From IMG/VR virus record IMGVR_UViG_3300037087_000760, positions 124,001-188,000 of that record: a DNA stretch of 64,000 bases. One strand, written 5' to 3'. The position numbers and the translations under genes are program-made. This document shows positions 30,494 through 51,120 of the stretch, in pieces; within the stretch, counting starts at the first letter, position 1, and the number at the start of each line of letters is the position of its first letter. The notes under the pieces were generated by a model that was not told the origin of the DNA, made no database searches, and worked only from the letters and a program-made list of their open reading frames with translations.

Positions 30494-30604
30494 AATCTCT
30501 GACATGGCACCCACTCTAAGGGACCAATACGAAAAGTTTGGGAGCTATCTGGAACAAGGCCGGAAGGCAGAAGGGATGGTAGTGGGGAGCCTAAATCAGA
30601 GATT
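30494..30604 (+). ncRNA. Structured ~111-nt RNA with SRP helix-8-like GCC-GGAA-GGC hairpin
   Basis: 9-bp terminal stem AATCTCTGA/TCAGAGATT; CCCACT/AGTGGG; GCTATC/GATGGT; CAAG-GCC-GGAA-GGC-AGAA. Confidence 0.4.
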
Positions 30605-30669
30605 TTTTAAATATTTTTATCAAATAATTTTTTTTATTCAGAAATTTGACATAATTTTGTAGTCCCTTG

Positions 30670-31072
30670 TTTGATAAAGAGTGTGAGTCAAAGGAAACAA
30701 TAAAGATTTTTAAGTCTTGAGTTCCGGCTGTAAAGGTAGCATACTCTTGTTCTTTGATTTAATGATGAAAAAGTTAGTTCTCGAAGATTAACGGCACCAG
30801 AAAGGTGTACGACACTCGTTGAGAGTGTACGATACTAAGAGGTGTATCAGAATCTTTGAAACGGGTATAAACCCGTTTGGGGAGGCGAGCAGCCGAACCA
30901 AATACAAACTCATATAACTCCGGCCCGCAAGTCGGATGAAAATTGAGTATTCAGTTTTGCGGAACTGTTGGGATAGCTAACATAAATTTATTTGTTGTGG
31001 TGATAAGTCCAAATCGATATGATTTAGTTCAGGAAGTATCGGACTAATTTGGTGAAAAACAAACACAACAAC
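30670..31072 (+). ncRNA. Candidate large ornate ncRNA
   Basis: No ORF of 60 aa or more, GC-elevated, dense hairpins (AAACGGGT/ACCCGTTT, ACACTC/GAGTGT, TGTTGTG/CACAACA), crossing helices at the 5' end. Confidence 0.5.
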
Positions 31073-31074
31073 AC

Positions 31075-31136
31075 GGACAGGTAGCTTAAGAGAGAGCCGT
31101 ATCAACGAGACGGTGGTTTAAACCCACCTCTGTCCA
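31075..31136 (+). ncRNA. 62-nt tRNA-like element lacking a normal anticodon arm
   Basis: Acceptor GGACAGG/TCTGTCC+A, D stem GCT/AGC, T arm GGTGG-TTTAAAC-CCACC; only 14 nt between D and T arms. Confidence 0.6.
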
Positions 31137-31309
31137 CAATATAAAGGGTGCAAAACTTGTTTTAACAATGTTTTTCGGGACGGTTTAGTTAAATCGGTTA
31201 TTCTTAACCAGCCCTTCTTAGAAAATTAGAAGAATCTGATACCCGATGGTGTATAGGATACCCGAAGTACAAGGGATGATCGGTGGCAACACAATCAACT
31301 TCTTTTAAC

Positions 31310-31441
31310 GAGTGTATTAGTGTAACGAAAGCACAGGCTGTTTGATGTTAGAGTAAGTTTTAGACGGCGGTCTTGGTCATTAGATTGACAAAACTGAAAT
31401 ATCGTAGGTCGGATGAGGGTTCAAATCCCTCATACATTCCA
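31310..31441 (+). ncRNA. ~130-nt tRNA-like element with expanded anticodon and variable regions
   Basis: GAGTGTAT/ATACATTC acceptor, D stem GTG/CAC, T arm GAGGG-TTCAAAT-CCCTC, GCTGTTT/AGACGGC stem closing an oversized loop. Confidence 0.55.
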
Positions 31442-31713
31442 AAAGGTGATGTGATGGAATAGTTTTTTCCATCCTGTTTTAAGGAGAGAACATTTGAGGA
31501 TAAAGCGAGCCTACATCACAAACAGGATCACCAAATAAGGTGAGGGAAACAAAGTAGAGTACCTTTTCTTCGGATTGAGGCCTTCGGGCCGAGGGAAATG
31601 ACCTGTTCTCCCTCAACTTTTTTAAAAAACGAAATTAAATTAAACTTTTTGAAAAAAAAGTTCTAAAATAGAAAAAAGAGACTTTATAAGTTAAATATAT
31701 AATAAAAAAACAT

Positions 31714-31784
31714 ATCCAGTAGGAACGTAAGTTCCGTTTTGGGACGCTCAGCGACCCAGAGGGGAAAACTCCCCGCAACTGGAT
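31714..31784 (+). promoter_or_regulatory. Four-way-junction RNA at the 5' end of the rplL-tRNA transcript
   Basis: ATCCAGT/ACTGGAT enclosing GGAAC-GTAA-GTTCC, TGGG..CCCA and GGGG..CCCC hairpins. Confidence 0.5.
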
Positions 31785-31888
31785 AAACTTTTTGAAATGA
31801 TTATGACACAGAACATCCAAAATATGATTATTAATCAGATACCCGGTAAAAATACCGATTGGATGAACTTTGTCTATAACGAATATAG

Positions 31889-31921
31889 AAAAAACCCAAT
31901 CGGAAACGATTGGGTTTTTTT
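31889..31921 (+). terminator. Intrinsic terminator of the attenuator
   Basis: ACCCAATCG-GAAA-CGATTGGGT followed by a T-run. Confidence 0.9.
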
Positions 31922-31952
31922 GTTTTATATGTCCACCATAGTTTTTAACTGG

Positions 31953-32044: not shown

Positions 32045-32422
32045 ATGGAAGATTTAAAAAAATTAGCGGATGATCTGAGTAATCTCACCGTATTAGAGTG
32101 TTACCAGTTAGCTAAGATAATGAAAGAAGAATACGGAATAGAATCAAATACAAAAATTGTTGGTGTGAATGTATCACCAGTTCCAACTAAGGTAGTTGAA
32201 ATTGAAAAAACAAGTTTTGATGTGATTCTAAAATCAGCAGGAACAACCAACAAACTTGGTGTTATCAAATCCATCAAAGAAATGACAGGACAAAGTTTAT
32301 TGGAAATTAAGAATCTCGTTGATAATGCACCAGCGAAACTAAAAGAAAATGTAAGTAAAGATGAAGCTATGTCTTTACTGAATATTCTGAAAGAATTAGG
32401 TGCAGAAATTGAAGTTCTTTGA
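32045..32422 (+). CDS. rplL: Ribosomal protein bL12 (L7/L12)
   Basis: LSNLTVLE, EKTSFDVILK, KLGVIKSIKEMTG, LVDNAP, LKELGAEIEV. Confidence 0.93.
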   Translation: MEDLKKLADDLSNLTVLECYQLAKIMKEEYGIESNTKIVGVNVSPVPTKVVEIEKTSFDVILKSAGTTNKLGVIKSIKEMTGQSLLEIKNLVDNAPAKLKENVSKDEAMSLLNILKELGAEIEVL

Positions 32423-32449
32423 AAATAATAAAAAATGTAGTAGCGAGTT

Positions 32450-32546
32450 TGAGTGTTACTTCGTAGCTCAACAGTCGAGCATCAATCAGTTAAATTGAAA
32501 GTTGTGGGTGCGATTCCCACCGAACCCGAAAGGGTAATATCACTCA
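32450..32546 (+). ncRNA. tRNA-Asn(GTT)-like RNA with a hairpin inserted in the acceptor stem
   Basis: D arm GCTC/GAGC, loop CA-GTT-AA, T arm GTGGG/CCCAC; acceptor TTCG/CGAA interrupted by CCC-GAAA-GGG then TGAGTG/CACTCA. Confidence 0.65.
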
Positions 32547-32571
32547 ATGATTATCTCTACATTTTTTTAAT

Positions 32572-32649
32572 GGGTGTGTAGCTCAGTAGCGTTAGAGCGC
32601 GACACTGATAATGTCGAGGTCGTAGGTTCAAGTCCTACCATACCCACCA
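32572..32649 (+). tRNA. tRNA-Ile(GAT)
   Basis: Canonical cloverleaf with encoded CCA. Confidence 0.96.
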
Positions 32650-32659
32650 AAAATAACAC

Positions 32660-32741
32660 TGTGTCGTACGCAGCCGATCCTGATAAGATCGAGAACTTGT
32701 AACTGGTGTTGAAAATGTGGGTTCGAATCCCACCGGCACAA
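32660..32741 (+). tRNA. D-armless tRNA-Ile(GAT) with 25-nt variable region
   Basis: TGTGTCG/CGGCACA+A; CGATC-CTGATAA-GATCG; canonical T arm; only 8 nt between acceptor and anticodon stems. Confidence 0.65.
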
Positions 32742-32750
32742 CAAAAATTT

Positions 32751-32822
32751 GGGTTGGTAGTACTAATGAAAAACGGCGGCCTGTTAAGCCGCGAGATGTG
32801 GGTTCAAGTCCCACCCGGCCCT
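32751..32822 (+). tRNA. tRNA-Asn(GTT), weak D arm, U73
   Basis: GCGGC-CTGTTAA-GCCGC; T arm GTGGG-TTCAAGT-CCCAC. Confidence 0.8.
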
Positions 32823-32831
32823 CAATATTAT

Positions 32832-32905
32832 TCCTCAGTAGCTCAGCTGGTTAGAGCATTTGACTGTTAATCAAAGGGTCACAGGTCCAAATCCTGTCTG
32901 GGGAG
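32832..32905 (+). tRNA. tRNA-Asn(GTT)
   Basis: Canonical TCCTCAG/CTGGGGA+G; T loop variant TCCAAAT. Confidence 0.93.
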
Positions 32906-32910
32906 CAAAA

Positions 32911-32987
32911 TTCGGAATGTTTGTCTGTGATTGGGTGCACCACACAGATAATAAAGGAAAAATGTGGTTCAATTCCACCATTCCGAG
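32911..32987 (+). ncRNA. tRNA-like element with acceptor and T arm but a single long hairpin replacing D and anticodon arms
   Basis: TCGGAATG/CATTCCGA; TTGTCTGTG/CACAGATAA; GTGG-TTCAATT-CCAC. Confidence 0.55.
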
Positions 32988-32995
32988 CAAAAATA

Positions 32996-33087
32996 GGGAG
33001 TGTAGCTGATTTGGTTTAGCGGCAGACCGTTAATCTGTGACTGAAAATATTGAAATAAAGTTGGTTCGACCCCATCCTCTCCCGCCA
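32996..33087 (+). tRNA. tRNA-Asn(GTT) with 21-nt AT-rich variable region
   Basis: GCAGA-CCGTTAA-TCTGT; G73 plus CCA encoded; C33. Confidence 0.7.
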
Positions 33088-33095
33088 GTACATAT

Positions 33096-33175
33096 TGTGG
33101 TGTATCCCCCATGTCTTATAAACATGCATTAAAAGGGTAATAGCGTGTATGTGGGTTCGAGTCCCACCACCACAA
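33096..33175 (+). tRNA. D-armless tRNA-Ile(TAT) with 24-nt variable region
   Basis: TGTGGTG/CACCACA+A; CATGT-CTTATAA-ACATG; canonical T arm. Confidence 0.65.
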
Positions 33176-33180
33176 CAAAT

Positions 33181-33252
33181 GGTCGGGTAAGCTAACGGTT
33201 AAACTGGATGTCTTATACACATCTTTTAAGAGTTCGAATCTCTTCCTGACTA
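33181..33252 (+). tRNA. tRNA-Ile(TAT)
   Basis: GATGT-CTTATAC-ACATC; full cloverleaf. Confidence 0.85.
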
Positions 33253-33257
33253 CAAAT

Positions 33258-33333
33258 GGCGAGATAGCTCAGACGGTTTTAGAGCGTCGGATTCATAACC
33301 CGGAGGTCGAGGGTTCAACTCCCTCTCTCGCTA
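33258..33333 (+). tRNA. tRNA-Met(CAT), elongator type
   Basis: Canonical cloverleaf, loop TT-CAT-AA. Confidence 0.93.
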
Positions 33334-33341
33334 CCCAAAAT

Positions 33342-33413
33342 AGTCCTATGGCGTAACGCGAAGCGTGACTCCCCTTGAAGGAGATGGTACTGGTTCGAAT
33401 CCAGTTAGGACTG
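33342..33413 (+). tRNA. tRNA-Gln(TTG), C33 variant
   Basis: AGTCCTA/TAGGACT+G; loop CC-TTG-AA. Confidence 0.8.
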
Positions 33414-33418
33414 CAAAT

Positions 33419-33504
33419 ATCAATGTGAACGGAATGGTTATCGTAGAGGTCTCATAAGCCTTTCAACTCGTTGAGTTGTGGTGGTTCGAATCCACTCATT
33501 GATA
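33419..33504 (+). tRNA. tRNA(CAT), Met or Ile2, with long variable arm
   Basis: GAGGT-CTCATAA-GCCTT; variable hairpin TCAAC/GTTGA. Confidence 0.75.
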
Positions 33505-33510
33505 CAAAAT

Positions 33511-33581
33511 AGTCCTGTGGTGTAACGGTAGCATGCGAGCCTTTGAAGCTTTGGGTACAGATTCGAATTCTGTCAGGACTG
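33511..33581 (+). tRNA. tRNA-Gln(TTG)
   Basis: AGTCCTG/CAGGACT+G; loop CT-TTG-AA. Confidence 0.88.
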
Positions 33582-33587
33582 CAAAAT

Positions 33588-33660
33588 TGTTCTGTCGTAT
33601 AATTGGCAGTACAGCACCCTCTGAAGGTGTATGGTGTAGGTTCGAGTCCTACTGGAACAG
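33588..33660 (+). tRNA. tRNA-Gln(CTG)
   Basis: GCACC-CTCTGAA-GGTGT; G73. Confidence 0.88.
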
Positions 33661-33665
33661 CAAAT

Positions 33666-33737
33666 GGTTCTGTGGTGTAATGCGTAGCACGAGTGATTCT
33701 GAATCACTTGGTTAAGGTTCGAATCCTTACAGAACTA
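33666..33737 (+). tRNA. tRNA-Gln(CTG), A73
   Basis: AGTGA-TTCTGAA-TCACT; full cloverleaf. Confidence 0.85.
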
Positions 33738-33738
33738 C

Positions 33739-34053
33739 ATGAAAAAGGACATAAGAAAGACATTTCGTAAAGAGGTATTCACCAGAGATAAGTATACTTG
33801 TAAAGGATGTGATCAAAAACTTGATGAATCTGAATTGGATGCACATCACATCACTGACCGCAATGAAATGCCAAATGGTGGATATGTGAAAGAGAACGGT
33901 ATAACTCTTTGTAAGAAAGATTGTCATATAAAAGCTGAAAAATTTCATATAACAGATGGAAAAGAATGGGTAGAGGGATTTCATCCAGATGACTTATACG
34001 AGAAGATTGATTCATCTAAGGGGAAGGCTGTTTTAATGTCTCAAATTATTTAG
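33739..34053 (+). CDS. HNH endonuclease
   Basis: RDKYTCKGC, LDAHHI, ENGITLC...CHIKAE. Confidence 0.85.
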   Translation: MKKDIRKTFRKEVFTRDKYTCKGCDQKLDESELDAHHITDRNEMPNGGYVKENGITLCKKDCHIKAEKFHITDGKEWVEGFHPDDLYEKIDSSKGKAVLMSQII

Positions 34054-34419
34054 AATAATGAGAAATAATTTTTTTATTGATTTAATTTTTGTATCTTTGT
34101 ATTGTATAAATTTAAATTATATGAAACAGTTTATTAAACCATCAACATTCAAAGAAAGAAAAAAAAGACCAGATAAAACGAAAGTTGATGAATTTATCGA
34201 AAAGTTCAACAAACTTATAAAAAAGGGAGAATTAGAGGCTAATGATGTACTCAATAAACTCCCATACTTAAATGAATCTGAGTTTAATCTGGCTGTTGCT
34301 ATTGCTCGTGAAAATGGTTGGCAATTAACTCAATTTGAAGATAATTACAACACGACATCTTACCAACTTACAGAAATAAAACTTTCTGTTTAAAAAACAA
34401 TATATAATCATTGTTGTAT

Positions 34420-34490
34420 TGTCCTATGGTGTAATGGCAACACGTGGGTTTTTGGAGCCTTAGTTCTAAGTTCGAATCTTAGTAGGACAA
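34420..34490 (+). tRNA. tRNA-Gln(TTG), solitary
   Basis: TGTCCTA/TAGGACA; loop TT-TTG-GA; weak anticodon stem; AATATATA box at 34399. Confidence 0.75.
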
Positions 34491-34585
34491 CTCTATCACA
34501 ATATACAAGAAGTCAACTACGATGGGAATCGAGGCCAACACGACAAGGATCAAACTTCGTTATAAAGATATTGTGGATTTTTTCT

Positions 34586-39203: not shown

Positions 39204-40001
39204 TTAATTTTTTCCATTTTCTTTTATAAATTCATCAATATGTTTAAGTCCACATTGGGTTTGTAATATATCATTGATATCCATGTTGAAATTGGCATAA
39301 TCCCTATGACTATGATCTTCATTTAATAATTTAGTAATTAATTCAATACAATAATTACCCCATACCCTTTTAATCTCCTTTACTCTCCAACTATCATTGA
39401 GGGCTTTATTATATTCAAATTCTCGTTTTTCTATCAATGAATTGAATTTCTCTGATAAATCATTTTCATCGAACTTGACTTTTTTTGACTGTTCGATTTC
39501 CCAGAGATAATAATATACAGTATCTAAGTGTGATTTTATTATATCAGAAGAAGAAACCCAATTCCATTTCTCTTTTTTCCATTCATGTTGACAATCATTA
39601 CATTTGTTAACTTCATTCGTATCCATTTCTCCGTGCATACTACCACTCATACTACCAGAAAATAAGAAAAAATCTCCTTCCACATGACCATCTACCTGAC
39701 CTTGAACTCTCTTTATTCTATCGTTTACTTTCGAACTACCACATTTGGGACATTTATTATTGTGTCTGTTAGCATAACCTTTGTCCTTTTCCTCTTTCTC
39801 TGAAGCTTCATTTTTACAAATTTCATCGAATGATTGATATTGATTCTTTAAAACAGCCAATCTTTTTTCCTTAATAACAGGATCGACAGATTCGAGTTCT
39901 ATTTTCTGAAAAGATCTTTTAATTGAATGCCAAACACCATACCAATTAGTAGTGAATATAATGAATAATACTACTACAGCAACAATAAAAATATATTCCA
40001 T
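39204..40001 (-). CDS. Membrane-anchored zinc-ribbon protein
   Basis: N-terminal TM helix; CPKCGS and CNDCQHEW. Confidence 0.55.
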   Translation of the reverse strand: MEYIFIVAVVVLFIIFTTNWYGVWHSIKRSFQKIELESVDPVIKEKRLAVLKNQYQSFDEICKNEASEKEEKDKGYANRHNNKCPKCGSSKVNDRIKRVQGQVDGHVEGDFFLFSGSMSGSMHGEMDTNEVNKCNDCQHEWKKEKWNWVSSSDIIKSHLDTVYYYLWEIEQSKKVKFDENDLSEKFNSLIEKREFEYNKALNDSWRVKEIKRVWGNYCIELITKLLNEDHSHRDYANFNMDINDILQTQCGLKHIDEFIKENGKN

Positions 40002-41818: not shown

Positions 41819-42808
41819 ATGACTAACAAAAAAGATAAAAAAATAGGACTTGTATTTGGAAAGTTCATGCCCCTTCATAATGGACACATGGCCTTGATTC
41901 GATTTGCACAATCTCAGTGTGATAAACTATATGTATTGTTATGTGAGGCTAATGATGAACCAATATGTGGAAAAATTCGATTAGGATGGTTATTGGACAC
42001 ATTCAAAGATGATTTGAACATAGAAGTGAGAATTACTGATGTTCAATTACCATTAGTTCCCTATTCATCTAAATTAATAGCTAAAATGTGGGCCAAATTT
42101 TTCAAGGAAGAATTTCCTGATGTGAATATTCTATTTACTTCGGAAAGATATGGTGATTTCACAGCAGAATTCATGGGTATAAAACATATACTTTTTGATA
42201 ATGACAGAGAAGAAGTTTTTGTATCAGCCACCAAGATTCGTAATCATCCACTCATTTATTGGGATTATATTCCCGACATTGTAAAACCGTACTTTGTTAA
42301 GAAAATTTGTATTTGTGGAACAGAATCAACGGGAAAAAGTATATTAACCGAAAAACTTGCTAAGAGATTTCATACTAACTTTGTTCCAGAATGGGGTAGA
42401 ACTTTATGTCCGTCTACAACTGAATGTACCATAGATATAATTAAACAAATCGGTAAATCCCACGCTACTGACATTCACAATAAAATACAATTCTCACATA
42501 AATTTTTATTTTCAGATACCGACCTGAATACAACAAAAATGTATTCCTATTTCTTATTCAATGAAATACCGAAATTTGATGATTGGATTGAACAAGAAAA
42601 TAAGTTCGATTTGTACATTTTTCTTGAAAACGATGCCCCTTTTATTCAGGATGGAACACGACTGACAAAAGAAAGAAGGGATGAACTACGAGATTACCAT
42701 TACGACTACCTTATATCTCAAGGATGTAAAGTTGAAATTGTAACTGGTAGTGATTGGGAAATCAGGTATGAAAAAGCTGTCAGAATAATTGAGGAAAATT
42801 TCGGATAA
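41819..42808 (+). CDS. nadR: NadR-type NMN adenylyltransferase / ribosylnicotinamide kinase
   Basis: GKFMPLHNGH, FTSERYG, VSATKIR, GTESTGKS, EWGR, DTD, QDGTR. Confidence 0.92.
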   Translation: MTNKKDKKIGLVFGKFMPLHNGHMALIRFAQSQCDKLYVLLCEANDEPICGKIRLGWLLDTFKDDLNIEVRITDVQLPLVPYSSKLIAKMWAKFFKEEFPDVNILFTSERYGDFTAEFMGIKHILFDNDREEVFVSATKIRNHPLIYWDYIPDIVKPYFVKKICICGTESTGKSILTEKLAKRFHTNFVPEWGRTLCPSTTECTIDIIKQIGKSHATDIHNKIQFSHKFLFSDTDLNTTKMYSYFLFNEIPKFDDWIEQENKFDLYIFLENDAPFIQDGTRLTKERRDELRDYHYDYLISQGCKVEIVTGSDWEIRYEKAVRIIEENFG

Positions 42809-42813
42809 GAATC

Positions 42814-43104
42814 ATGAGAAATTACAAATTAGAAAAATTACAAGCCGGAGAAAGTTTCGTTACCAGTGAAAAAGGTAATTCCATGTCACCAATTATTAAG
42901 TCGGGACAAAAACATAAACTTGTTCCCGCCACTTGGAGAGATGTAGATGTAGATGATATAGTCTATTGTAAAGTCAAAGGAAACTTCTACACTCACCTTG
43001 TAAAAGCAAAAAATGAAGATAAGGGTTGCTTAATAGGTAACAACAAAGGTGGAGTTAACGGATGGACTAAACAAGTCTATGGTAAGGTTGTAAAAATCCT
43101 TTAA
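42814..43104 (+). CDS. S24/S26 peptidase-like small protein
   Basis: KGNSMSPII.SG. Confidence 0.5.
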   Translation: MRNYKLEKLQAGESFVTSEKGNSMSPIIKSGQKHKLVPATWRDVDVDDIVYCKVKGNFYTHLVKAKNEDKGCLIGNNKGGVNGWTKQVYGKVVKIL

Positions 43105-44360
43105 ATATAAATATTCAGAATTTCATTCAGTTTAATTTTGGTTTCCTCATTCAGTGATTTCCCCTTATTTTCATTATACAGAATCATAAAGGAACTTACC
43201 ACTTTATTGAATTTGAAACTATCCGTATAACCAAATACAGTTTCCTTAAACTTTTCAATATCAACAGTTTCCTTACCAGTTCTTGACATCCATTCATCCC
43301 ATTTTTTGAAGAATCTGATGATACCATTGATGTTCTGGTCTGACCATTGACCACCATCGAAATAATGTCCGATGAACATCAGATAAAACCTCAGAACCTT
43401 TGGATCATAGTTATCTGGATTAACAATATTTCCTTTACTTTTGGCCATCTTGATTCCATTATTCAGAATCATTCCCTGATGCACCACTTTTTTAAAAGGT
43501 TCTTCCTCACTGATCATCCCAATATCATACAGGAACATATTAATAAAACGAGCATATATCAGGTGCATGCAAGCGTGTTCACTTCCCCCGATGTACAGAT
43601 CAACTTGTTTATATTTATCTTTACTACACAGTTCATTTTCGTTGTACGAATCACAATAACGGATAAAATAGAAACTACTATCTACGAAAGTATCCAGAGT
43701 ATCAGTCTCACCTTCAATTGGAATAGGACATCCCCAACTTCTTTGTCTACTGACACACCAATCATGTTGATTCTCCAGCCAATCTCTTTGAGAATTGATT
43801 GTTTTCTTTGGGTAATCAATCCAATCCAGATTTTTTATCAGTCGGTCTTTATATTCGGTGATTTTAAAATACCATTGTTCCATTTGACGAATTTCAATGG
43901 TCGTATTACATCTATCACATTTACCATCTTTGACCTGTTCACGAGCCAGAACAGTTCCACAACTTGGACACCAATTTACTTCACCCCAAGCTTTGTAAGC
44001 CAGTCCATGTTCTTTCAGTTTGATAAATATCCATTGTGTCCACTTCTGGTAAGATGGATCTGAAGTAATTACTTTTTCTTCAAAAGAAGTGTCCATTCTT
44101 TCCATCTGTTTACGGAAATTCTCAATGTTTTCATAGGTAACTTCTCTGGGATCTCTATTGACTGATTTGGCGTAATTTTCAGCTGGAAGTCCAAAGGAAT
44201 CATACCCAAACGGTTGAAAAACTTTAACTCCTTTATATCTTTGGTATCGACAATAACTGTCTACGATAGCGTAATTATAATAATGTCCGATGTGCAGTCC
44301 GTTTCCGCTCGGATAAGGAAACATGACAACCACCATTTTTTCATTTTTTATGTCGTTCAT
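43101..44360 (-). CDS. leuS: Minimal leucyl-tRNA synthetase (no CP1 editing domain, no C-terminal domain)
   Basis: MFPYPSG, HIGH, DSFGLPAEN, CPSC/CDRC, DWCVSRQRSWG, ETDTLDTF, GGSEHA, KMAKSKGN. Confidence 0.92.
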   Translation of the reverse strand: MNDIKNEKMVVVMFPYPSGNGLHIGHYYNYAIVDSYCRYQRYKGVKVFQPFGYDSFGLPAENYAKSVNRDPREVTYENIENFRKQMERMDTSFEEKVITSDPSYQKWTQWIFIKLKEHGLAYKAWGEVNWCPSCGTVLAREQVKDGKCDRCNTTIEIRQMEQWYFKITEYKDRLIKNLDWIDYPKKTINSQRDWLENQHDWCVSRQRSWGCPIPIEGETDTLDTFVDSSFYFIRYCDSYNENELCSKDKYKQVDLYIGGSEHACMHLIYARFINMFLYDIGMISEEEPFKKVVHQGMILNNGIKMAKSKGNIVNPDNYDPKVLRFYLMFIGHYFDGGQWSDQNINGIIRFFKKWDEWMSRTGKETVDIEKFKETVFGYTDSFKFNKVVSSFMILYNENKGKSLNEETKIKLNEILNIYI

Positions 44361-45120
44361 TGTCTTTTAATTTGTTTGAGAAATGTTCAATTGAGATATT
44401 ATGTTTTTTGATTGTTTTATAAATAAGACTTCTATTACTTTCGTTATATTCCATATTTAAATTTTTCATAATATCTCTATAAGATTTTGATTTAGAAATA
44501 ATCCCTTTAAAAAGATTAATATCATAATCGAAATAATCATAATTTCTTTTATTTGTGAAATCTTTCCAATCATCTTTTTCAATTATTTCCTTATCTTCGT
44601 ATCTAAAATAACACCCACCAGCCGTCCCTTTCAATTGACAACTAAATTTAATTTGTTGTCTAAAAATACCTGTTTCTCTTTCAGCTCCTCGAAGGCTAAT
44701 GAATTTTTTTAAAGGAGTAAAATTTTTATCATACATTATAATTGATTTCTTATTTGGATTGGATATTTTCATTAGTTTTTTACTTTTATCAGAATGTTTT
44801 TTTCCTGTCCAATCTACACCATCTCCACCATCTGTACTATTCTTCAATCTAAATCCCCAGCATTTAAATTGAGAAATCCAATATCTTTCTAATGAATCAA
44901 TATTATTTTTATCACCGATATCAAGTATTTCTATTATTGGTGAAAGATTTTTATTTTTGAGATATTTTAACCATTTATTTTTTCTTGTCCAAGGTTCTTG
45001 ACGGATACTCCAATTTGACATATGTCCCCTCAATCTTTTTTCTAAATTTTTGGTCTTACCTACATATTTTATAATTTTATCTTCTGGGTCTGTTAATGTA
45101 TAAATATAAAATTCCATCAT
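44341..45120 (-). mobile_element. Free-standing GIY-YIG homing endonuclease with NUMOD-type DNA-binding motifs
   Basis: YIYTL...YVGKT...R...H, LERYWI, NSTDGGDG, GKKHSDKSK, FISLRGAERETG. Confidence 0.88.
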
Positions 45121-45169
45121 AGATTTTTATTTCTATATATAAAAATTTATGTGTAATGTTTCATAGTTG

Positions 45170-45243
45170 TAACCCCACCCGGACTTGAACCGAGATATTT
45201 AGTTTCTAAAACTAACGCCGCTAACCAATTAGGCCATGGGGTC
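45170..45243 (-). tRNA. tRNA-Leu(TAG) with short variable loop
   Basis: TTAGT-TTTAGAA-ACTAA; 4-nt variable loop; A73. Confidence 0.8.
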
Positions 45244-45253
45244 ATTATTTTAG

Positions 45254-45327
45254 TAGTTCTGTTCGGACTTGAACCGAAATATTTGGTTTTTGAAACCAAC
45301 GCCGCTAACCAATTAGGCCACAGAACC
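45254..45327 (-). tRNA. tRNA-Leu(CAA) with short variable loop
   Basis: TTGGT-TTCAAAA-ACCAA; near-copy of the neighbouring D arm; A73. Confidence 0.8.
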
Positions 45328-45332
45328 TTTTG

Positions 45333-45417
45333 TATCGATGGTGGGACTCGAACCCACACCCTCGTAATGAGGAACGGCTTCTGAGGCCGTCGCGTCTACC
45401 AATTCCGCCACACCGAC
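45333..45417 (-). tRNA. tRNA-Leu(CAG), long arm
   Basis: Canonical Leu D arm GCG-GAATTGGTAGA-CGC; CT-CAG-AA. Confidence 0.94.
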
Positions 45418-45469
45418 AAATTTCAAATATTTACCAGTTTTTTGAAAAACTGTTCAAAATTTGATTTTG

Positions 45470-45543
45470 TAGCACCTGTCGGATTCGAACCGACAAACTT
45501 GGATTTTAAGACCAATATGGTTGCTCTATTACATCAAGGTGCC
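45470..45543 (-). tRNA. tRNA-Leu(TAA) with short variable loop
   Basis: TTGGT-CTTAAAA-TCCAA; A73. Confidence 0.75.
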
Positions 45544-45548
45544 ATTTG

Positions 45549-45632
45549 TAGCCTCTGTGGGAATCGAACCCACACGGTCTTTCGACCACTGGATTTTGAG
45601 TCCAGAGCGTCTACCAATTCCGCCAAGAGGCC
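45549..45632 (-). tRNA. tRNA-Leu(CAA), long arm
   Basis: Canonical cloverleaf, CT-CAA-AA. Confidence 0.95.
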
Positions 45633-45637
45633 ATTTG

Positions 45638-45722
45638 TGGGAGTTGATGGAGTTGCACCACCCGAGCCCTGAGGACAACAGATTTACAGTCTGCCCCGCT
45701 ACTACTTACGGAATAAACTCCC
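45638..45722 (-). tRNA. tRNA-Tyr(GTA), long arm
   Basis: GCAGA-CTGTAAA-TCTGT; atypical T loop TGCAACT. Confidence 0.88.
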
Positions 45723-45726
45723 AAAG

Positions 45727-45811
45727 TGACCAAGGTGGGATTCGAACCCACACGGGCGTAAAGCCCAACGGATTTTAAGTCCGTCGCGTCTACCAGTTCC
45801 GCCACAAGGCC
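45727..45811 (-). tRNA. tRNA-Leu(TAA), long arm
   Basis: CT-TAA-AA; two T-T mismatches in acceptor stem. Confidence 0.88.
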
Positions 45812-45819
45812 AATTTCAG

Positions 45820-45901
45820 TGTCCATAGGGGGACTCGAACCCCCACGCCTTTCGACAATAGTTTCTTAGGCTATCGCGTCTACCAGTTCCGCCATACGGA
45901 C
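45820..45901 (-). tRNA. tRNA-Leu(AAG), long arm
   Basis: ATAGC-CTAAGAA-ACTAT; canonical Leu D arm. Confidence 0.88.
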
Positions 45902-45918
45902 AATTTCAAAGAACTCAG

Positions 45919-45990
45919 TGGGAATAGAAGGATTCGAACCTACAAATCACGATTTTACAGACCGCTGAGCGACCACTGCTCAATATTCCC
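45919..45990 (-). tRNA. tRNA-Tyr(GTA) with short variable loop
   Basis: GGGAATA/TATTCCC+A; CT-GTA-AA; 5-nt variable loop. Confidence 0.85.
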
Positions 45991-45995
45991 GTTTG

Positions 45996-46068
45996 TGGAA
46001 GTACAAGGATTCGAACCTCGAATACACGGTGTTACAAGCCGCTGAGCGACCATCCGCTCACTACTTCC
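45996..46068 (-). tRNA. tRNA-Tyr(GTA) with short variable loop
   Basis: GGAAGTA/TACTTCC+A; TT-GTA-AC. Confidence 0.85.
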
Positions 46069-46069
46069 T

Positions 46070-46225
46070 TGGTGGGGGTGGATGGAATTTCACACATCGG
46101 ATGATAAGTTTACAGCTTACGAAGTAACTGTTTTACATCACTACAATTGATTGGCCTTCGATAAAGGAAACAGTCCAATTCAGAATCCTTATCAATCGAG
46201 ATACTTTGGTACAGTAATCACCCCC
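46070..46225 (-). ncRNA. tRNA-Tyr(GTA)-like RNA with ~80-nt structured insertion in the D loop
   Basis: GGGGGTG/CACCCCC+ACCA; ACTGT/ACAGT D stem; GTAAG-CTGTAAA-CTTAT; degenerate T arm. Confidence 0.65.
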
Positions 46226-46257
46226 TTTTATTTTCAATATGTTTAAGAACATGCAAC

Positions 46258-46289
46258 AAAAAACCCATCACTTTTTCAAGGACGGGTCT
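46258..46289 (-). terminator. Intrinsic terminator of the Leu/Tyr attenuator
   Basis: GACCCGTC-CTTGAAAAAGT-GATGGGTT followed by a T-run. Confidence 0.8.
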
Positions 46290-46316
46290 TTCTGATTCTA
46301 TGATAATATTTAAAGT

Positions 46317-46403
46317 TTATCTTTCAGCAATACTAACCCATCCTCGATTTTGATAGAGGTATAAATACAAATAATATAGGTTAATATTTACTCTGTTTTT
46401 CAT
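46317..46403 (-). promoter_or_regulatory. Attenuator leader peptide MKNRVNINLYYLYLYLYQNRGWVSIAER
   Basis: Codons CTA TAT TAT TTG TAT TTA TAC CTC TAT; 13-bp 1:2 stem, 10-bp 2:3 antiterminator, stop codon before segment 3. Confidence 0.85.
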
Positions 46404-46467
46404 AACTTTTATTCTTTCTGAAAATTATATATTAAATAATTTTAGTCTGTTTTTTCTATTTATACGA

Positions 46468-46475
46468 CAAAGGTA
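46468..46475 (-). promoter_or_regulatory. Bacteroidota sigma70-type -7 box (TAnnTTTG)
   Basis: TACCTTTG upstream of the leader; similar boxes just upstream of pncB, rnpB, the 26906 ORF and the 34121 and 41152 starts. Confidence 0.6.
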
Positions 46476-46499
46476 TGTAAAAGTTTTAAAATAAAAAAA

Positions 46500-47111
46500 T
46501 TATTTTGAAGTTTTCTTGAAATAGTCTATCACTTCTTTGAATTTAACATCAGATTTTATTTCATTAAAATCTAAATCATAGATGTCATATACATATTCTT
46601 TTGTGTTGTTTTGGTCTACATATATATAAACTATAAACTTGGGATTAACAAGTCTAACATCGAATATGACCTGTGATTCTTTATCTTGATCGTTATAGGA
46701 TTTTATTGCCTCTGGTGAAGTGAATACTAATCCATATCTACCATAAGAACCCAGATTCTTAGTGTATCTACTGTCCATTTTCTTAGTAGTACAATCCCAA
46801 GCCACACTGAAATTACCTGATTGTACTTCTTTCATTCCTGTTTTGGTTTTAGTCAGGGATGAATACCAAGAACCGATACCTCTGAATCCTGTTTTAAGGA
46901 TTCCCTCGATATTTTCTTTTTTGGTAAAGTGTATAATGGGTGAATCGGATGGTAATTTTTTAGAACCTATCCAAGAAAATCCTCTTTGTGGTCTTTTATT
47001 CTCAAAAGAAAGGATACAATTATGAAAATCATCGATTGTTTCGATTCTTTGGATGACTTCCTTATTCTTTCTGGTAAACTCAGTGAAATTATCCATATAC
47101 TGAAGGTTCAT
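46500..47111 (-). CDS. ART-fold-like protein with capsid-targeting-like N-terminus
   Basis: MDNFTEF; IIHFTKKENIEGILKTGF; QVIF. Confidence 0.4.
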   Translation of the reverse strand: MNLQYMDNFTEFTRKNKEVIQRIETIDDFHNCILSFENKRPQRGFSWIGSKKLPSDSPIIHFTKKENIEGILKTGFRGIGSWYSSLTKTKTGMKEVQSGNFSVAWDCTTKKMDSRYTKNLGSYGRYGLVFTSPEAIKSYNDQDKESQVIFDVRLVNPKFIVYIYVDQNNTKEYVYDIYDLDFNEIKSDVKFKEVIDYFKKTSK

Positions 47112-47547: not shown

Positions 47548-48033
47548 TCATGATTTCCAATTTTTGAATGGGATTTTAGCTAAATTACAATTATAATATT
47601 TACTATCCCCTGTAACTTCTTCTTTAATCCAATCTGGTTTTTCAAATGATTCATTTTCAGAATCCAGTTCAATCTCAGCTACTATTAATCCACCGTTATG
47701 TCCAAAAAACACATCAACTTCCCAAGTATGTCCTTTGTATGGAATGATGTATCTCGATTTGACAATGAAATTTTTCTCACAATAGTCTACGATAAGATCA
47801 ACGGCATCCCCAAAAGGAATTTCATATTCATATTCTTTTCGTGATATAAGTCCAGATCCTTTGACAGTCATGAATCCTTTCTTTCCAAAAGTTCTAATTC
47901 GAACTAATTTTTCATTATCTTCGAACATGAAACCTTGACGAACCTCCACAGATTTATATTTATCTTTAATCTGTAAAAACTTTTCTTCGTCAACAAGAAA
48001 TTTTCTTTCGATTTCTAAATTTTTATTTTTCAT
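47548..48033 (-). CDS. CYTH-domain protein
   Basis: EIERKFLV, VRIR, TVKG, EYEYEI, KSRY, WEVDVF, AEIEL, YYNCNL. Confidence 0.92.
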   Translation of the reverse strand: MKNKNLEIERKFLVDEEKFLQIKDKYKSVEVRQGFMFEDNEKLVRIRTFGKKGFMTVKGSGLISRKEYEYEIPFGDAVDLIVDYCEKNFIVKSRYIIPYKGHTWEVDVFFGHNGGLIVAEIELDSENESFEKPDWIKEEVTGDSKYYNCNLAKIPFKNWKS

Positions 48034-50157: not shown

Positions 50158-51120
50158 TTATTTGATTTCTATTTTTATGTTTGGTATGAAAATATTTACT
50201 TTATCAAGATCATCTATTAAATCTTTCTTGTATAATTTAGGATACCAATTTGAATCATATTCGATACCAATTATATATTTATTAATACCTTTTATACAAT
50301 CAAAATTATTTGATGGATCATATTTCAAATTAAGTTCAGTATGAGAATTACATTCTACTCTTTCTTCAGCTTCGTGTTTAAAATATGGATCTTTATGATA
50401 TAAATGAGATCTAATTTTAAAATGATGGCTCATTCTATCACCATCGAATGTTATTTTAACTGGATGGTTATTATAATTTAGATTTTTATTTCTCGAAAAA
50501 GATATAAAATGAAATAAGGAAATCATTCTATCATCTTTTAAAATATTCTTCAAATTATCCAAAGTTGTCCAATGATATAAGAATCCAACCTGTTTTGACT
50601 CTTTTAATTCACAACCCCAATTATAATTTCTCTCCCTTTGATATTGTTTTATTATTTCAACTAAACTTGACCAAAAGACAACAGCTGTAGTTCCTACCCC
50701 TTCTTTAAATTTTATTGAATCGTATCCTTTCTTTTTAAGTTTGGGAACTATATGATATTCCCTATCCAATATTTCTAAAACTTTATATGGTGAAAAATAA
50801 TCATAACCATAGAATCTTTGTTTCCTCATAAGATCATTTAATTCTGTTTCGGGTATAGGTAACGATCTCAATAATTTTTCATAATTATCAATTCCTTGCT
50901 CTCCATAAGGTGTTAAATCCAATGTTTTTTCCAAGTGAAGTTTAACTACATAGATATATTTTCCATATCTTTTCGATTCCTTTTCCGTATCGGAGAAATA
51001 TATTCCCATTCTACTTTTTGTAGTATCTCGTCTGGTTTTAAATGATGTAATATCATCATTATAACTTCCATGATACCAAATTTCATTATCATTATTGAAT
51101 TTTTCAAAAGTGGTTAACAT
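50158..51120 (-). CDS. Tandem ART-fold (ART-PolyVal-like) protein
   Basis: MLTTFEKF; WYHGS...GIYFSD...YDSI; second domain LYHWT...ISFSR...EAEE. Confidence 0.55.
   Translation of the reverse strand: MLTTFEKFNNDNEIWYHGSYNDDITSFKTRRDTTKSRMGIYFSDTEKESKRYGKYIYVVKLHLEKTLDLTPYGEQGIDNYEKLLRSLPIPETELNDLMRKQRFYGYDYFSPYKVLEILDREYHIVPKLKKKGYDSIKFKEGVGTTAVVFWSSLVEIIKQYQRERNYNWGCELKESKQVGFLYHWTTLDNLKNILKDDRMISLFHFISFSRNKNLNYNNHPVKITFDGDRMSHHFKIRSHLYHKDPYFKHEAEERVECNSHTELNLKYDPSNNFDCIKGINKYIIGIEYDSNWYPKLYKKDLIDDLDKVNIFIPNIKIEIK

Follow-up and report, generated by a model that had tools for sequence, protein, structure and literature searches.

A predicted leader-peptide attenuator in front of the Tyr and Leu tRNA genes of a huge bacteriophage

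Organization of the locus

The locus lies on the minus strand of a 64-kb stretch of DNA (64,000 nucleotides, positions 124,001 to 188,000 of IMG/VR record IMGVR_UViG_3300037087_000760), referred to here as the window, which derives from a huge bacteriophage. A very short open reading frame rich in Leu and Tyr codons is followed by three alternative RNA helices and a U-run and, about 30 nt later, by an array of Tyr, Tyr-like and Leu tRNA genes, a GIY-YIG endonuclease gene and a gene for a reduced leucyl-tRNA synthetase (LeuRS). The features are as follows.

46424-46460, minus strand: promoter-like motif, AATAGAAAAAACAGACT (46460-46444), then TTTAATATATAAT ending in TATAAT at 46429-46424.
46317-46403, minus strand: leader ORF of 28 codons, from ATG at 46403 to TAA at 46319-46317, encoding MKNRVNINLYYLYLYLYQNRGWVSIAER.
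46353-46379, minus strand: regulatory codon run CTA TAT TAT TTG TAT TTA TAC CTC TAT (LYYLYLYLY), with four Leu codons, all different, and five Tyr codons.
46376-46388, minus strand: segment 1, AATATTAACCTAT, the 5' strand of the protector helix 1:2, overlapping the start of the codon run.
46329-46346, minus strand: segment 2, of which ATGGGTTAGTATT (46341-46329) pairs with segment 1, and C GAGGATGGGTT (46346-46335) pairs with segment 3 to form the antiterminator.
46278-46291, minus strand: segment 3, AAA GACCCGTCCTT, the strand shared by the antiterminator (2:3) and the terminator (3:4).
46258-46275, minus strand: segment 4, AAAGT GATGGGTT, and the U-run (46263-46258), which with segment 3 form the predicted intrinsic terminator.
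46070-46225, minus strand: 156-nt tRNA-like RNA with a CCA end.
45994-46068, minus strand: Tyr-like tRNA with a 9-nt anticodon loop, CUUGUAACA.
45169-45990, minus strand: tRNA array, comprising Tyr(gta) 45990-45918, Leu(aag), Leu(taa), Tyr(gta, long variable arm) 45722-45637, Leu(caa), Leu(taa), Leu(cag), Leu(caa) and Leu(tag) 45243-45169.
44341-45120, minus strand: GIY-YIG homing-endonuclease-like gene.
43101-44360, minus strand: mini-LeuRS gene, 419 aa.

The initial annotation, which proposed a Leu/Tyr attenuator with four different Leu codons ahead of these genes, is confirmed in its sequence observations. The 13-bp helix 1:2 includes three G.U pairs. Helix 2:3, formed by GAGGATGGGTT (46345-46335) and GACCCGTCCTT (46288-46278), contains 11 bp and is extendable to 13 in the fold. 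In the terminator GACCCGTC pairs with GATGGGTT (46269-46262), which is followed by six T. The 8-mer GATGGGTT occurs in both segment 2 and segment 4, and the stop codon of the leader lies before segment 3.

The description of the downstream genes required correction. Four Tyr(GTA) or Tyr-like genes had been proposed, but only two Tyr tRNAs are recognized: a standard tRNA-Tyr(gta), and a second one with a long variable arm that is found only at a relaxed ARAGORN threshold. The other two elements are not called as tRNA genes by any tool. The one with the 9-nt loop folds as a cloverleaf, scores 25.6 bits against the Rfam tRNA model, below the threshold of 29, and keeps the same loop in a related sequence, L077:243-315 (L numbers denote the huge-phage contigs and loci used for comparison). 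The 156-nt RNA displays a 7-bp acceptor stem (GGGGGTG/CACCCCC), an encoded ACCA end and an internal CUGUAAA (Tyr-type) loop motif, yet ARAGORN with introns allowed, a tmRNA search and Rfam all failed to identify it. Its orthologue, L077:131-239, lacks the roughly 55-nt hairpin, and the seventh acceptor pair covaries from G-C to T-A. The seven tRNA-Leu genes proposed initially are all present.

The putative LeuRS at the end of the unit is a bacterial-type catalytic core only, with HIGH and KMAKS motifs but without the CP1 editing domain and the C-terminal domain: LeuRS structures in the PDB match it at 1e-83 in two stretches, and TIGR00396 scores 381 bits, below its cut-off of 548. The protein is conserved at about 419 aa in 33 IMG/VR contigs. 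The GIY-YIG gene (Pfam GIY-YIG, 6.6e-9; the NCBIfam group I intron endonuclease model is hit below its cut-off) is probably an insertion, as in the relatives L021, L025 and L005 the last tRNA-Leu abuts the LeuRS-like gene directly. No terminator-like site lies on the minus strand between the array and the mini-LeuRS gene, which is probably the last gene of the regulated unit. Upstream of the leader, a gene for a 203-aa protein belongs to no recognized family, and the protein has no relative in IMG/VR other than itself and none in the metagenome contigs searched. A blastn search of the region against the GenBank phage collection gave no match, and no cultured relative was found among GenBank phages.

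The codon run and the leader fold exceed chance expectation

The leader folds with a z score of -3.7, and 0 of 200 shuffled sequences fold as well. The terminator hairpin (46291-46259, with six U) appears in the minimum-energy fold with a duplex energy of about -15 kcal/mol, although a simple terminator scan missed it; its stem is interrupted by a bulge. The z score of helix 2:3 against shuffles is -5.6. With nine consecutive codons, the Leu/Tyr run is the longest Leu/Tyr segment in all six frames of the window, the next best being six. The presence of four different Leu codons alone is not remarkable under the codon usage of this phage (P = 0.135), whereas the exact set has P = 0.0066. Interestingly, each codon has a matching anticodon in the array: tag, caa, taa, aag and gta. 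The suggestion of isoacceptor-specific sensing is consistent with these codons being invariant, but it is only weakly supported statistically by this locus alone.

The leader is not preceded by a Shine-Dalgarno sequence. However, only 5 of 47 long ORFs in the window have one, and the A-rich upstream region of the leader resembles that of other genes of the phage. The 17-mer of the promoter-like motif occurs exactly only twice in the window, before each of two leaders (see below), and would put the transcript start about 15-20 nt before the leader ATG. Its function as a promoter is inferred.

Conservation and covariation among orthologues

A first search for leader homologues, by blastn-short and nhmmer against 32 LeuRS-linked loci, found nothing. 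Orthologues were recovered subsequently through the promoter motif and the exact codon run; a scan of IMG/VR with the promoter 17-mer gave mostly chance hits in A-rich DNA, and only L077 and L083 were useful. Together with the window, four sequence variants are available (the window, L083/L213/L215, L212 and L214), the orthologues being at about 80-85% identity.

All variants keep the ATG, the stop and the reading frame, including an in-frame 3-nt deletion, and the promoter motif is conserved. The 27 nt of the codon run are identical in the four variants although the flanks diverge by about 20%, and the rest of the peptide, which changes at seven or more positions, is not conserved. As a MAFFT alignment mis-registers segment 3 by one base, base pairs were tabulated sequence by sequence. 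Helix 2:3 is paired at 11 of 11 positions in all four variants and two positions covary (G-C / A-T / G-T and A-T / C-G), whereas helix 3:4 is kept with a changed sequence. The core of helix 1:2 is retained, with 1-2 mismatches at the edges in the orthologues. The three helices have comparable energies: -10.8 to -13.9 kcal/mol for 1:2 (-13.9 in the window), -14.3 to -19.8 for 2:3 and about -15 for 3:4. Only four variants are available and three of them share the same terminator, so that covariation rests on few independent events.

A ribosome footprint switches the predicted fold

Masking a 30-nt ribosome footprint at codons 7, 10 or 13 releases segment 2 and makes the antiterminator the minimum-energy fold, whereas a footprint further downstream, at codon 19, leaves the terminator in place. 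The last three regulatory codons lie too far 3' for a stalled ribosome to cover segment 1, as indicated by a mask at codon 16. In two orthologues the unmasked minimum-energy fold is already the antiterminator, and thus the basal state is uncertain.

Matched leaders recur in huge phages

A second unit in the same window shares the promoter motif, and the two upstream regions align over the motif and the -10 element at the same spacing.

31667-31925, plus strand: sister unit, with the promoter motif at 31667-31683, a leader reading MIMTQNIQNMIINQI from ATG 31797, the helices CATCCAA:TTGGATG and CCGATTGG:CCAATCGG, and the predicted terminator at 31891-31925.
32045-32422: L7/L12 gene.
32460-34491: Ile/Asn/Met/Gln tRNAs.

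The leader of this unit is the top Ile/Met/Asn/Gln segment in the window, and an orthologue is present in L077:3300-3480. Its ORF runs through the terminator, and a 1-nt indel changes the whole C-terminus of the peptide.

At least ten further huge-phage lineages carry leaders matched to their downstream tRNAs. In L021 the leader LSLSLSLSLSLS precedes Leu and Ser tRNAs, and every leader codon is matched by an anticodon. Matched leaders are also found in L005, L008/L029/L006, L039, L185, L166, L176/L170, L094, L189/L197, L047 and L216 (= LR745206.1), the last of which bears a Pro/Gln/Asp leader preceded by a close variant of the promoter motif. Lys leaders (MKQYKQIKQKQ and relatives) before tRNA-Lys in L006, L008 and L029 are weak, lack a clear terminator and were not counted, and the Leu/Val/Cys leader of L025/L026 is only marginal.

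An initial array-anchored statistic, based on a fixed 450-nt upstream window and a 600-nt array-splitting rule, missed several true cases, namely the second unit of the window and L005, and was replaced by a global ranking and by a terminator-anchored scan with permutation. In the latter, eight leaders score at least 4, against a mean of 0.33 and a maximum of 3 in 500 permutations of the leader-array pairings, and the summed score is 82, against a mean of 14.5 and a maximum of 32.9; none of the 500 permutations reached the observed match. Complementarity between the post-run region and the 5' arm of the terminator has a mean z of -3.3 over 14 leaders. In some members of this class, however, namely the Ile/Met/Asn/Gln unit of the window, L021 and L025, the terminator remains the minimum-energy fold under every mask, and the switch there would have to be kinetic.

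A model for demand-driven tRNA supply

Taken as a whole, the computational evidence strongly supports, in the absence of any experiment, a ribosome-mediated transcription attenuator that gates the phage's own Tyr/Leu tRNA array and probably the mini-LeuRS gene behind it; a rough probability of 0.8 is assigned to this reading. In the proposed scheme, transcription starts at a dedicated promoter and a ribosome translates the leader while RNA polymerase moves on. If every Leu and Tyr codon (CUA, UUG, UUA, CUC, UAU, UAC) is decoded quickly, the ribosome moves onto segment 2, segment 3 pairs with segment 4, and transcription ends at the U-run before the first tRNA-like gene. If any of these codons is decoded slowly, because the matching charged tRNA is scarce, the ribosome stalls on codons 9-14, covers segment 1 and leaves segment 2 free to pair with segment 3: the terminator cannot form, and polymerase reads into the array. 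Rising phage tRNA, and possibly LeuRS activity, would then speed up leader translation and shut the unit off again, a demand-driven negative feedback. Translation of the leader, use of the promoter and terminator, the direction of regulation in vivo and co-transcription of the LeuRS-like gene are all inferred, and neither the host nor the RNA polymerase that reads these signals is known, the Bacteroidetes host of the clade being taken from PMC7162821.

If correct, phage tRNA arrays would be feedback-regulated supply units rather than constitutive cargo, which bears directly on the long-standing question of why large phages carry tRNAs. The rule that leader composition should equal the downstream tRNA set can be used to annotate operon boundaries and odd tRNA-like genes in uncultured phage genomes, and these compact elements could be useful as reporters of tRNA availability, perhaps at isoacceptor resolution. 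A broader and more tentative possibility is that huge phages carry a general, modular system of isoacceptor-resolved sensors, in which each tRNA sub-array has its own leader and every codon species polls one of the tRNAs encoded downstream. The phage would then switch on exactly the replacement tRNAs that are running out, whether through a codon-usage mismatch, host shut-off or host anticodon-nuclease defences that deplete particular tRNAs. This would be the first case of tRNA genes regulated by ribosome-mediated attenuation, and a built-in detector of attack on the tRNA pool.

Alternative explanations

Leader translation might control the array without hairpin competition, through Rho-dependent termination on the untranslated leader, RNA cleavage triggered by ribosome stalling or stabilization of the tRNA precursor. 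The persistence of the terminator under every mask in several class members, their short antiterminators (6-8 bp) and the ORF that runs through the terminator of the sister unit are in keeping with this view. Nevertheless it appears unlikely for the present locus, where the three-helix geometry, the thermodynamic switch and the three-way covariation are exactly those expected for hairpin competition, and antiterminator complementarity is significantly enriched across the class.

About as improbable is a stand-alone unit, in which the short ORF and hairpin represent a small gene or small RNA with a constitutive terminator, or the terminator of the upstream 203-aa gene, and the array is transcribed from its own promoter just downstream, the codon match serving another purpose or none. 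The 25 nt between the terminator and the first tRNA-like gene are conserved among the orthologues, so a weak internal promoter cannot be excluded, no experiment shows read-through, and a consensus promoter scan is uninformative in this AT-rich DNA. On the other hand, the U-run is separated from the first gene by only about 30 nt here and 12-40 nt in other lineages, which leaves little room for a separate promoter. Furthermore, the antiterminator covaries with the terminator, which has no purpose at a constitutive terminator, and leaders track the identity of the downstream tRNAs in at least 12 lineages. The lack of peptide conservation outside the run and the C-terminal change in the sister unit argue against a functional small protein.

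It is very unlikely that the invariant 27-nt run is conserved as a DNA or RNA signal, such as a promoter element, a protein-binding site or an obligatorily unstructured spacer. Absolute nucleotide conservation is also what a binding site would show, and the run is AT-rich with TATAC- and TATTAT-like hexamers, but this does not explain why other lineages have entirely different runs that each spell the amino acids of their own downstream tRNAs, nor why start, stop and frame are preserved through an in-frame indel. Finally, chance is effectively refuted: although TA-rich DNA readily encodes Tyr, Leu, Ile and Asn, and four different Leu codons alone are not improbable, the run is the global maximum of the window, lies on the correct strand directly upstream of the only Tyr/Leu array and is identical in four diverged variants, and the same coincidence recurs with GC-richer codon sets (Pro/Gln/Asp, Lys/His/Phe/Ser/Trp, Arg/Trp/Leu/Lys) with a match that no permutation reaches.

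Comparison with known systems

Phage-encoded tRNA arrays, such as the T4 tRNA region and the arrays of huge phages described in PMC7162821, are thought to supplement or replace host tRNAs, and no regulatory leader has been described for them in the literature that could be searched. The mechanism invoked here is the known leader-peptide attenuation of amino-acid biosynthesis operons and a few synthetase genes; what is new is the target, as no description of it for tRNA genes was found. A Phe-rich leader ahead of the E. coli pheV/pheU tRNA-Phe genes is not supported: the 105 nt between yqgA and pheV in MG1655 hold only a promoter.

T-box riboswitches (Rfam RF00230) are a functional analogue, as a terminator/antiterminator switch upstream of translation-supply genes reports the state of a specific tRNA. 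A T-box, however, binds uncharged tRNA directly through one specifier codon and needs no translation, whereas the present element has a translatable ORF with a long codon run, and no T-box match was found at either unit of the window.

In the E. coli pheST attenuator, with its pheM leader, leader-peptide attenuation seems to control an aminoacyl-tRNA synthetase in response to the supply of its charged cognate tRNA, which resembles the probable control of the mini-LeuRS. That system would differ in being cellular, in sensing a single amino acid and in having no tRNA genes in the regulated unit.

The closest parallels are presumably the multivalent attenuators of amino-acid operons, the leu leader of E. 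coli/Salmonella (Rfam Leu_leader RF00512) and the ilvGMEDA leader. These appear to share a short ORF with a run of regulatory codons, the overlapping protector, antiterminator and terminator helices followed by a U-run, and a stop codon before segment 3; the ilv leader probably senses several amino acids, and the leu leader may depend on rare Leu codons (CUA, CUC; Carter, Bartkus and Calvo 1986). There is no sequence similarity: no Rfam leader family (Leu_leader, His_leader, Thr_leader, Trp_leader) is hit at E up to 10 in 44900-46800, and the sister unit hits Thr_leader only at 24.3 bits against a gathering score of 55. The element would work like these families without being a member of any of them. 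It is encoded by a phage, the genes it is predicted to regulate are tRNA genes plus a mini-LeuRS rather than biosynthetic enzymes, and its leader mixes Leu with Tyr in a codon set that mirrors the isoacceptors of the array.

Genomic setting

The window belongs to the IMG/VR contig IMGVR_UViG_3300037087_000760, which is 211 kb long, and is characterized by a G+C content of about 30%, many small ORFs and two tRNA arrays. Its LeuRS-like protein is 76% identical to one encoded by LR745206.1, a 634-kb uncultured phage of the size class for which Bacteroidetes hosts have been predicted (PMC7162821). Only 5 of 47 long ORFs are preceded by a Shine-Dalgarno-like motif and upstream regions are 53% A, a pattern that fits such a host. 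Genes in the neighbourhood of the element, at 41819-42808 (+), 47548-48033 (-) and 50158-51120 (-), include a NadR-like nicotinamide-nucleotide adenylyltransferase, a CYTH-domain protein and a protein with an ART-PolyVal ADP-ribosyltransferase domain.

Architecture of the Leu/Tyr leader

The initial annotation had proposed a Leu/Tyr attenuator consisting of a short reading frame followed by alternative helices, and all the coordinates and pairings it gave are correct. The elements, all located on the minus strand, are as follows.

46403-46317 (-), leader ORF encoding MKNRVNINLYYLYLYLYQNRGWVSIAER
46388-46376 (-), segment 1, which pairs over 13 bp with 46341-46329
46345-46335 (-), segment 2, GAGGATGGGTT, which pairs over 11-13 bp with segment 3
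46288-46278 (-), segment 3, GACCCGTCCTT, shared by the antiterminator (2:3) and the terminator (3:4)
46269-46262 (-), segment 4, GATGGGTT, which pairs with the same segment 3 and is followed by six U

Segments 2 and 4 share the exact 8-mer GATGGGTT, which is what two strands competing for one partner should look like. The unconstrained fold contains helices 1:2 and 3:4 at -35.3 kcal/mol, with z = -3.7. The Leu/Tyr run scores 9, whereas the next best Leu/Tyr segment anywhere in six frames of the 64 kb scores 6. The presence of four different Leu codons, which the initial annotation had emphasized, is by itself unremarkable (P = 0.135); however, the exact set includes two codons used at only about 6% each and has P = 0.0066.

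Genes downstream of the terminator

The region that follows the U-run is occupied by the genes below.

46225-46070 (-), 156-nt tRNA-like RNA with an encoded CCA end, beginning about 30 nt after the U-run
46068-45994 (-), Tyr-like tRNA with a 9-nt anticodon loop, CUUGUAACA, sub-threshold in Rfam
tRNA-Tyr(gta), and a second, long-arm tRNA-Tyr(gta) detected only at a relaxed threshold
seven tRNA-Leu genes, aag, taa, caa, taa, cag, caa and tag, of which the aag gene lies at 45901-45819 (-)
45120-44341 (-), GIY-YIG homing-endonuclease-like gene, overlapping the start of the next gene by 20 nt
44360-43101 (-), mini-LeuRS of 419 aa, a catalytic core with HIGH and KMAKS motifs but without the CP1 editing domain and the C-terminal domain

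The first of these genes remains unidentified: it displays a 7-bp acceptor stem, an ACCA end and an internal CUGUAAA motif, but is not recognized by Rfam or by ARAGORN, even with introns allowed or in a tmRNA search. The RNA is also present downstream of the terminator in the orthologues L212 and L214 and, at positions 131-239, in the orthologous contig L077, where it is about 108 nt long and lacks one hairpin; the acceptor pair covaries. The Tyr-like tRNA with the 9-nt loop is likewise conserved in L077 (243-315) and might decode unusually or act as a decoy. The CTC codon of the leader would need the tRNA-Leu with anticodon AAG carrying a modified A34, or the tag tRNA.

No terminator-like site separates the array from the endonuclease and LeuRS-like genes on the minus strand. 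In relatives the endonuclease gene is absent at this position and the last tRNA-Leu abuts the LeuRS-like gene directly. The mini-LeuRS (this gene and loci L003-L034) is conserved at this length in 33 IMG/VR huge-phage contigs, and in several of these it lies directly behind tRNA-Leu genes. The initial annotation's description of four Tyr or Tyr-like genes and a LeuRS downstream of the leader therefore needs qualification, but its gist holds.

Conservation among orthologues

A scan for the promoter motif and a scan for the exact codon run recovered three further variants of the element, designated L083/L213/L215, L212 and L214, which are about 80-85% identical to the window overall. All retain the ATG, the TAA and the reading frame, with L214 harbouring an in-frame 3-nt deletion. 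All preserve the 27-nt codon run without a single change, although the rest of the peptide differs at seven or more positions. Selection therefore acts on the codons and on the RNA, not on a peptide.

In helix 2:3 every one of 11 positions is paired in every variant and two positions covary, G-C / A-T / G-T and A-T / C-G. The terminator 3:4 is maintained with a different sequence, ACCCGGTC/GATCGGGT instead of GACCCGTC/GATGGGTT, whereas helix 1:2 keeps its core with one or two edge mismatches. The three helices have similar energies in all variants, and in two of them the antiterminator is even the unconstrained optimum, as is expected of a poised switch.

Direction of the switch

When a 30-nt ribosome footprint is forced single-stranded around codon 7, 10 or 13, the minimum-energy structure becomes the 13-bp antiterminator. 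In contrast, with the footprint at codon 19, on segment 2, the terminator forms. A stall on the Leu/Tyr codons is therefore predicted to give read-through, and smooth translation, or no translation, to give termination. A footprint at codon 16 no longer covers segment 1, so the first six codons of the run are the effective ones.

A sister unit in the window

The exact 17-mer of the promoter motif, AATAGAAAAAASAGACT, occurs only twice in the window, once before each of two leaders, and a TATAAT follows at the same spacing. Three copies with 3 mismatches, spaced about 140-150 nt apart at 39419-39722 (-), lie inside the 265-aa ORF 39204-40001 and are probably a repeated coding motif rather than promoters. 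The second unit comprises the following elements.

31667-31925 (+), promoter motif, leader and terminator, the leader starting at 31797 and reading MIMTQNIQNMIINQI
32045-34491 (+), phage L7/L12 gene and an array made only of Ile, Asn, Met and Gln tRNAs
32460-32524 and 32650-32745 (+), two odd tRNA-like genes at the head of this array, one with an Asn-type loop (CAGUUAA) and one with an Ile-type loop (CUGAUAA), neither called by ARAGORN

This leader is the top Ile/Met/Asn/Gln segment of the window; its helices are CATCCAA:TTGGATG and CCGATTGG:CCAATCGG, accompanied by a strong terminator. The orthologue in L077 has one C fewer, so that its ORF stops inside segment 2 after 20 codons, whereas the window copy reads through the terminator (57 codons). 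Again the RNA and the codon run are conserved, not the peptide. Upstream, between tRNA-Leu(taa) and the second leader, about 1.3 kb of G+C-richer DNA (30494-31790, +) contains no long ORFs but many stem-like stretches. The only Rfam matches here are a 129-nt tRNA-like hit with a long insert (31311-31439) and chance-level hits, and the region may hold unknown structured RNAs.

Recurrence in other lineages

Analogous leaders, each followed by downstream tRNAs, have been observed in other lineages.

L021: LSLSLSLSLSLS, then Leu(tag), Ser(gga), Ser(tga), Ser(gct), Leu(taa), Leu(caa), with every leader codon matched by an anticodon
L005: MTTMNLNMNMNLTVVLNTL, then Asn/Ile/Leu/Val/Thr/Met
L008/L029/L006: KHFSSHKHSFKFWF, then His/Phe/Trp/Lys/Ser
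L185: LLAADLLWADEDIL, then Asp/Glu/Leu/Ala/Trp
L166: LSKLLRRRKWLRR, then Arg/Trp/Leu/Lys
L176/L170: RQFVQIQVVRNFR, then Phe/Val/Ile/Gln/Arg
L094: LYPMPCYP, then Tyr/Pro/Leu/Met/Cys
L216 (= LR745206.1): PQPQDQDP, then Pro/Asp/Gln, behind a close variant of the same promoter motif

A terminator-anchored scan gave 46 unique candidates. Eight of these score at least 4, against a mean of 0.33 and a maximum of 3 in 500 permutations of leader-array pairings, and the summed score is 82, against a mean of 14.5 and a maximum of 32.9. Complementarity between the region after the run and the 5' arm of the terminator is also enriched, with a mean z = -3.3 over 14 leaders. The His/Phe/Trp/Lys/Ser trio constitutes a second orthologue set that shows the same pattern: an almost invariant run, a conserved GTTCGG repeat in segments 2 and 4, and covarying outer stem pairs. 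The U-runs lie 12-40 nt from the first tRNA in most cases, which leaves little room for a separate promoter.

Proposed mechanism

We propose that the element is a ribosome-mediated attenuator that measures how fast Leu and Tyr codons are decoded, whether through tRNA abundance, tRNA charging or both, and gates the phage's own Tyr/Leu tRNA genes accordingly. The confidence in this model, which is supported by the sequence evidence, is about 0.8 and is limited only by the absence of any expression data. The mini-LeuRS is probably gated as well. Because the products would relieve the stall, the circuit would be a negative feedback on tRNA supply. A more tentative idea is that each codon polls one isoacceptor: this fits the invariant codons and the codon-anticodon match here and in L021, but is not proven. 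The design appears to be widespread in huge phages.

Comparison with known systems

No description of leader-peptide control of tRNA genes, in phages or in cells, was found in full-text searches, in the huge-phage paper (PMC7162821) or in a 2026 jumbo-phage review, although an earlier account cannot be fully excluded as subscription-only literature lay outside the survey. A possible precedent in E. coli, pheV, did not stand up to inspection. What appears to be new is the set of genes placed under control, whereas the mechanism itself is already known. The element is not a member of any Rfam leader family or of the T-box family. As proposed, however, it works like the leu, ilv and pheST attenuators and fulfils every structural criterion that could be assessed.
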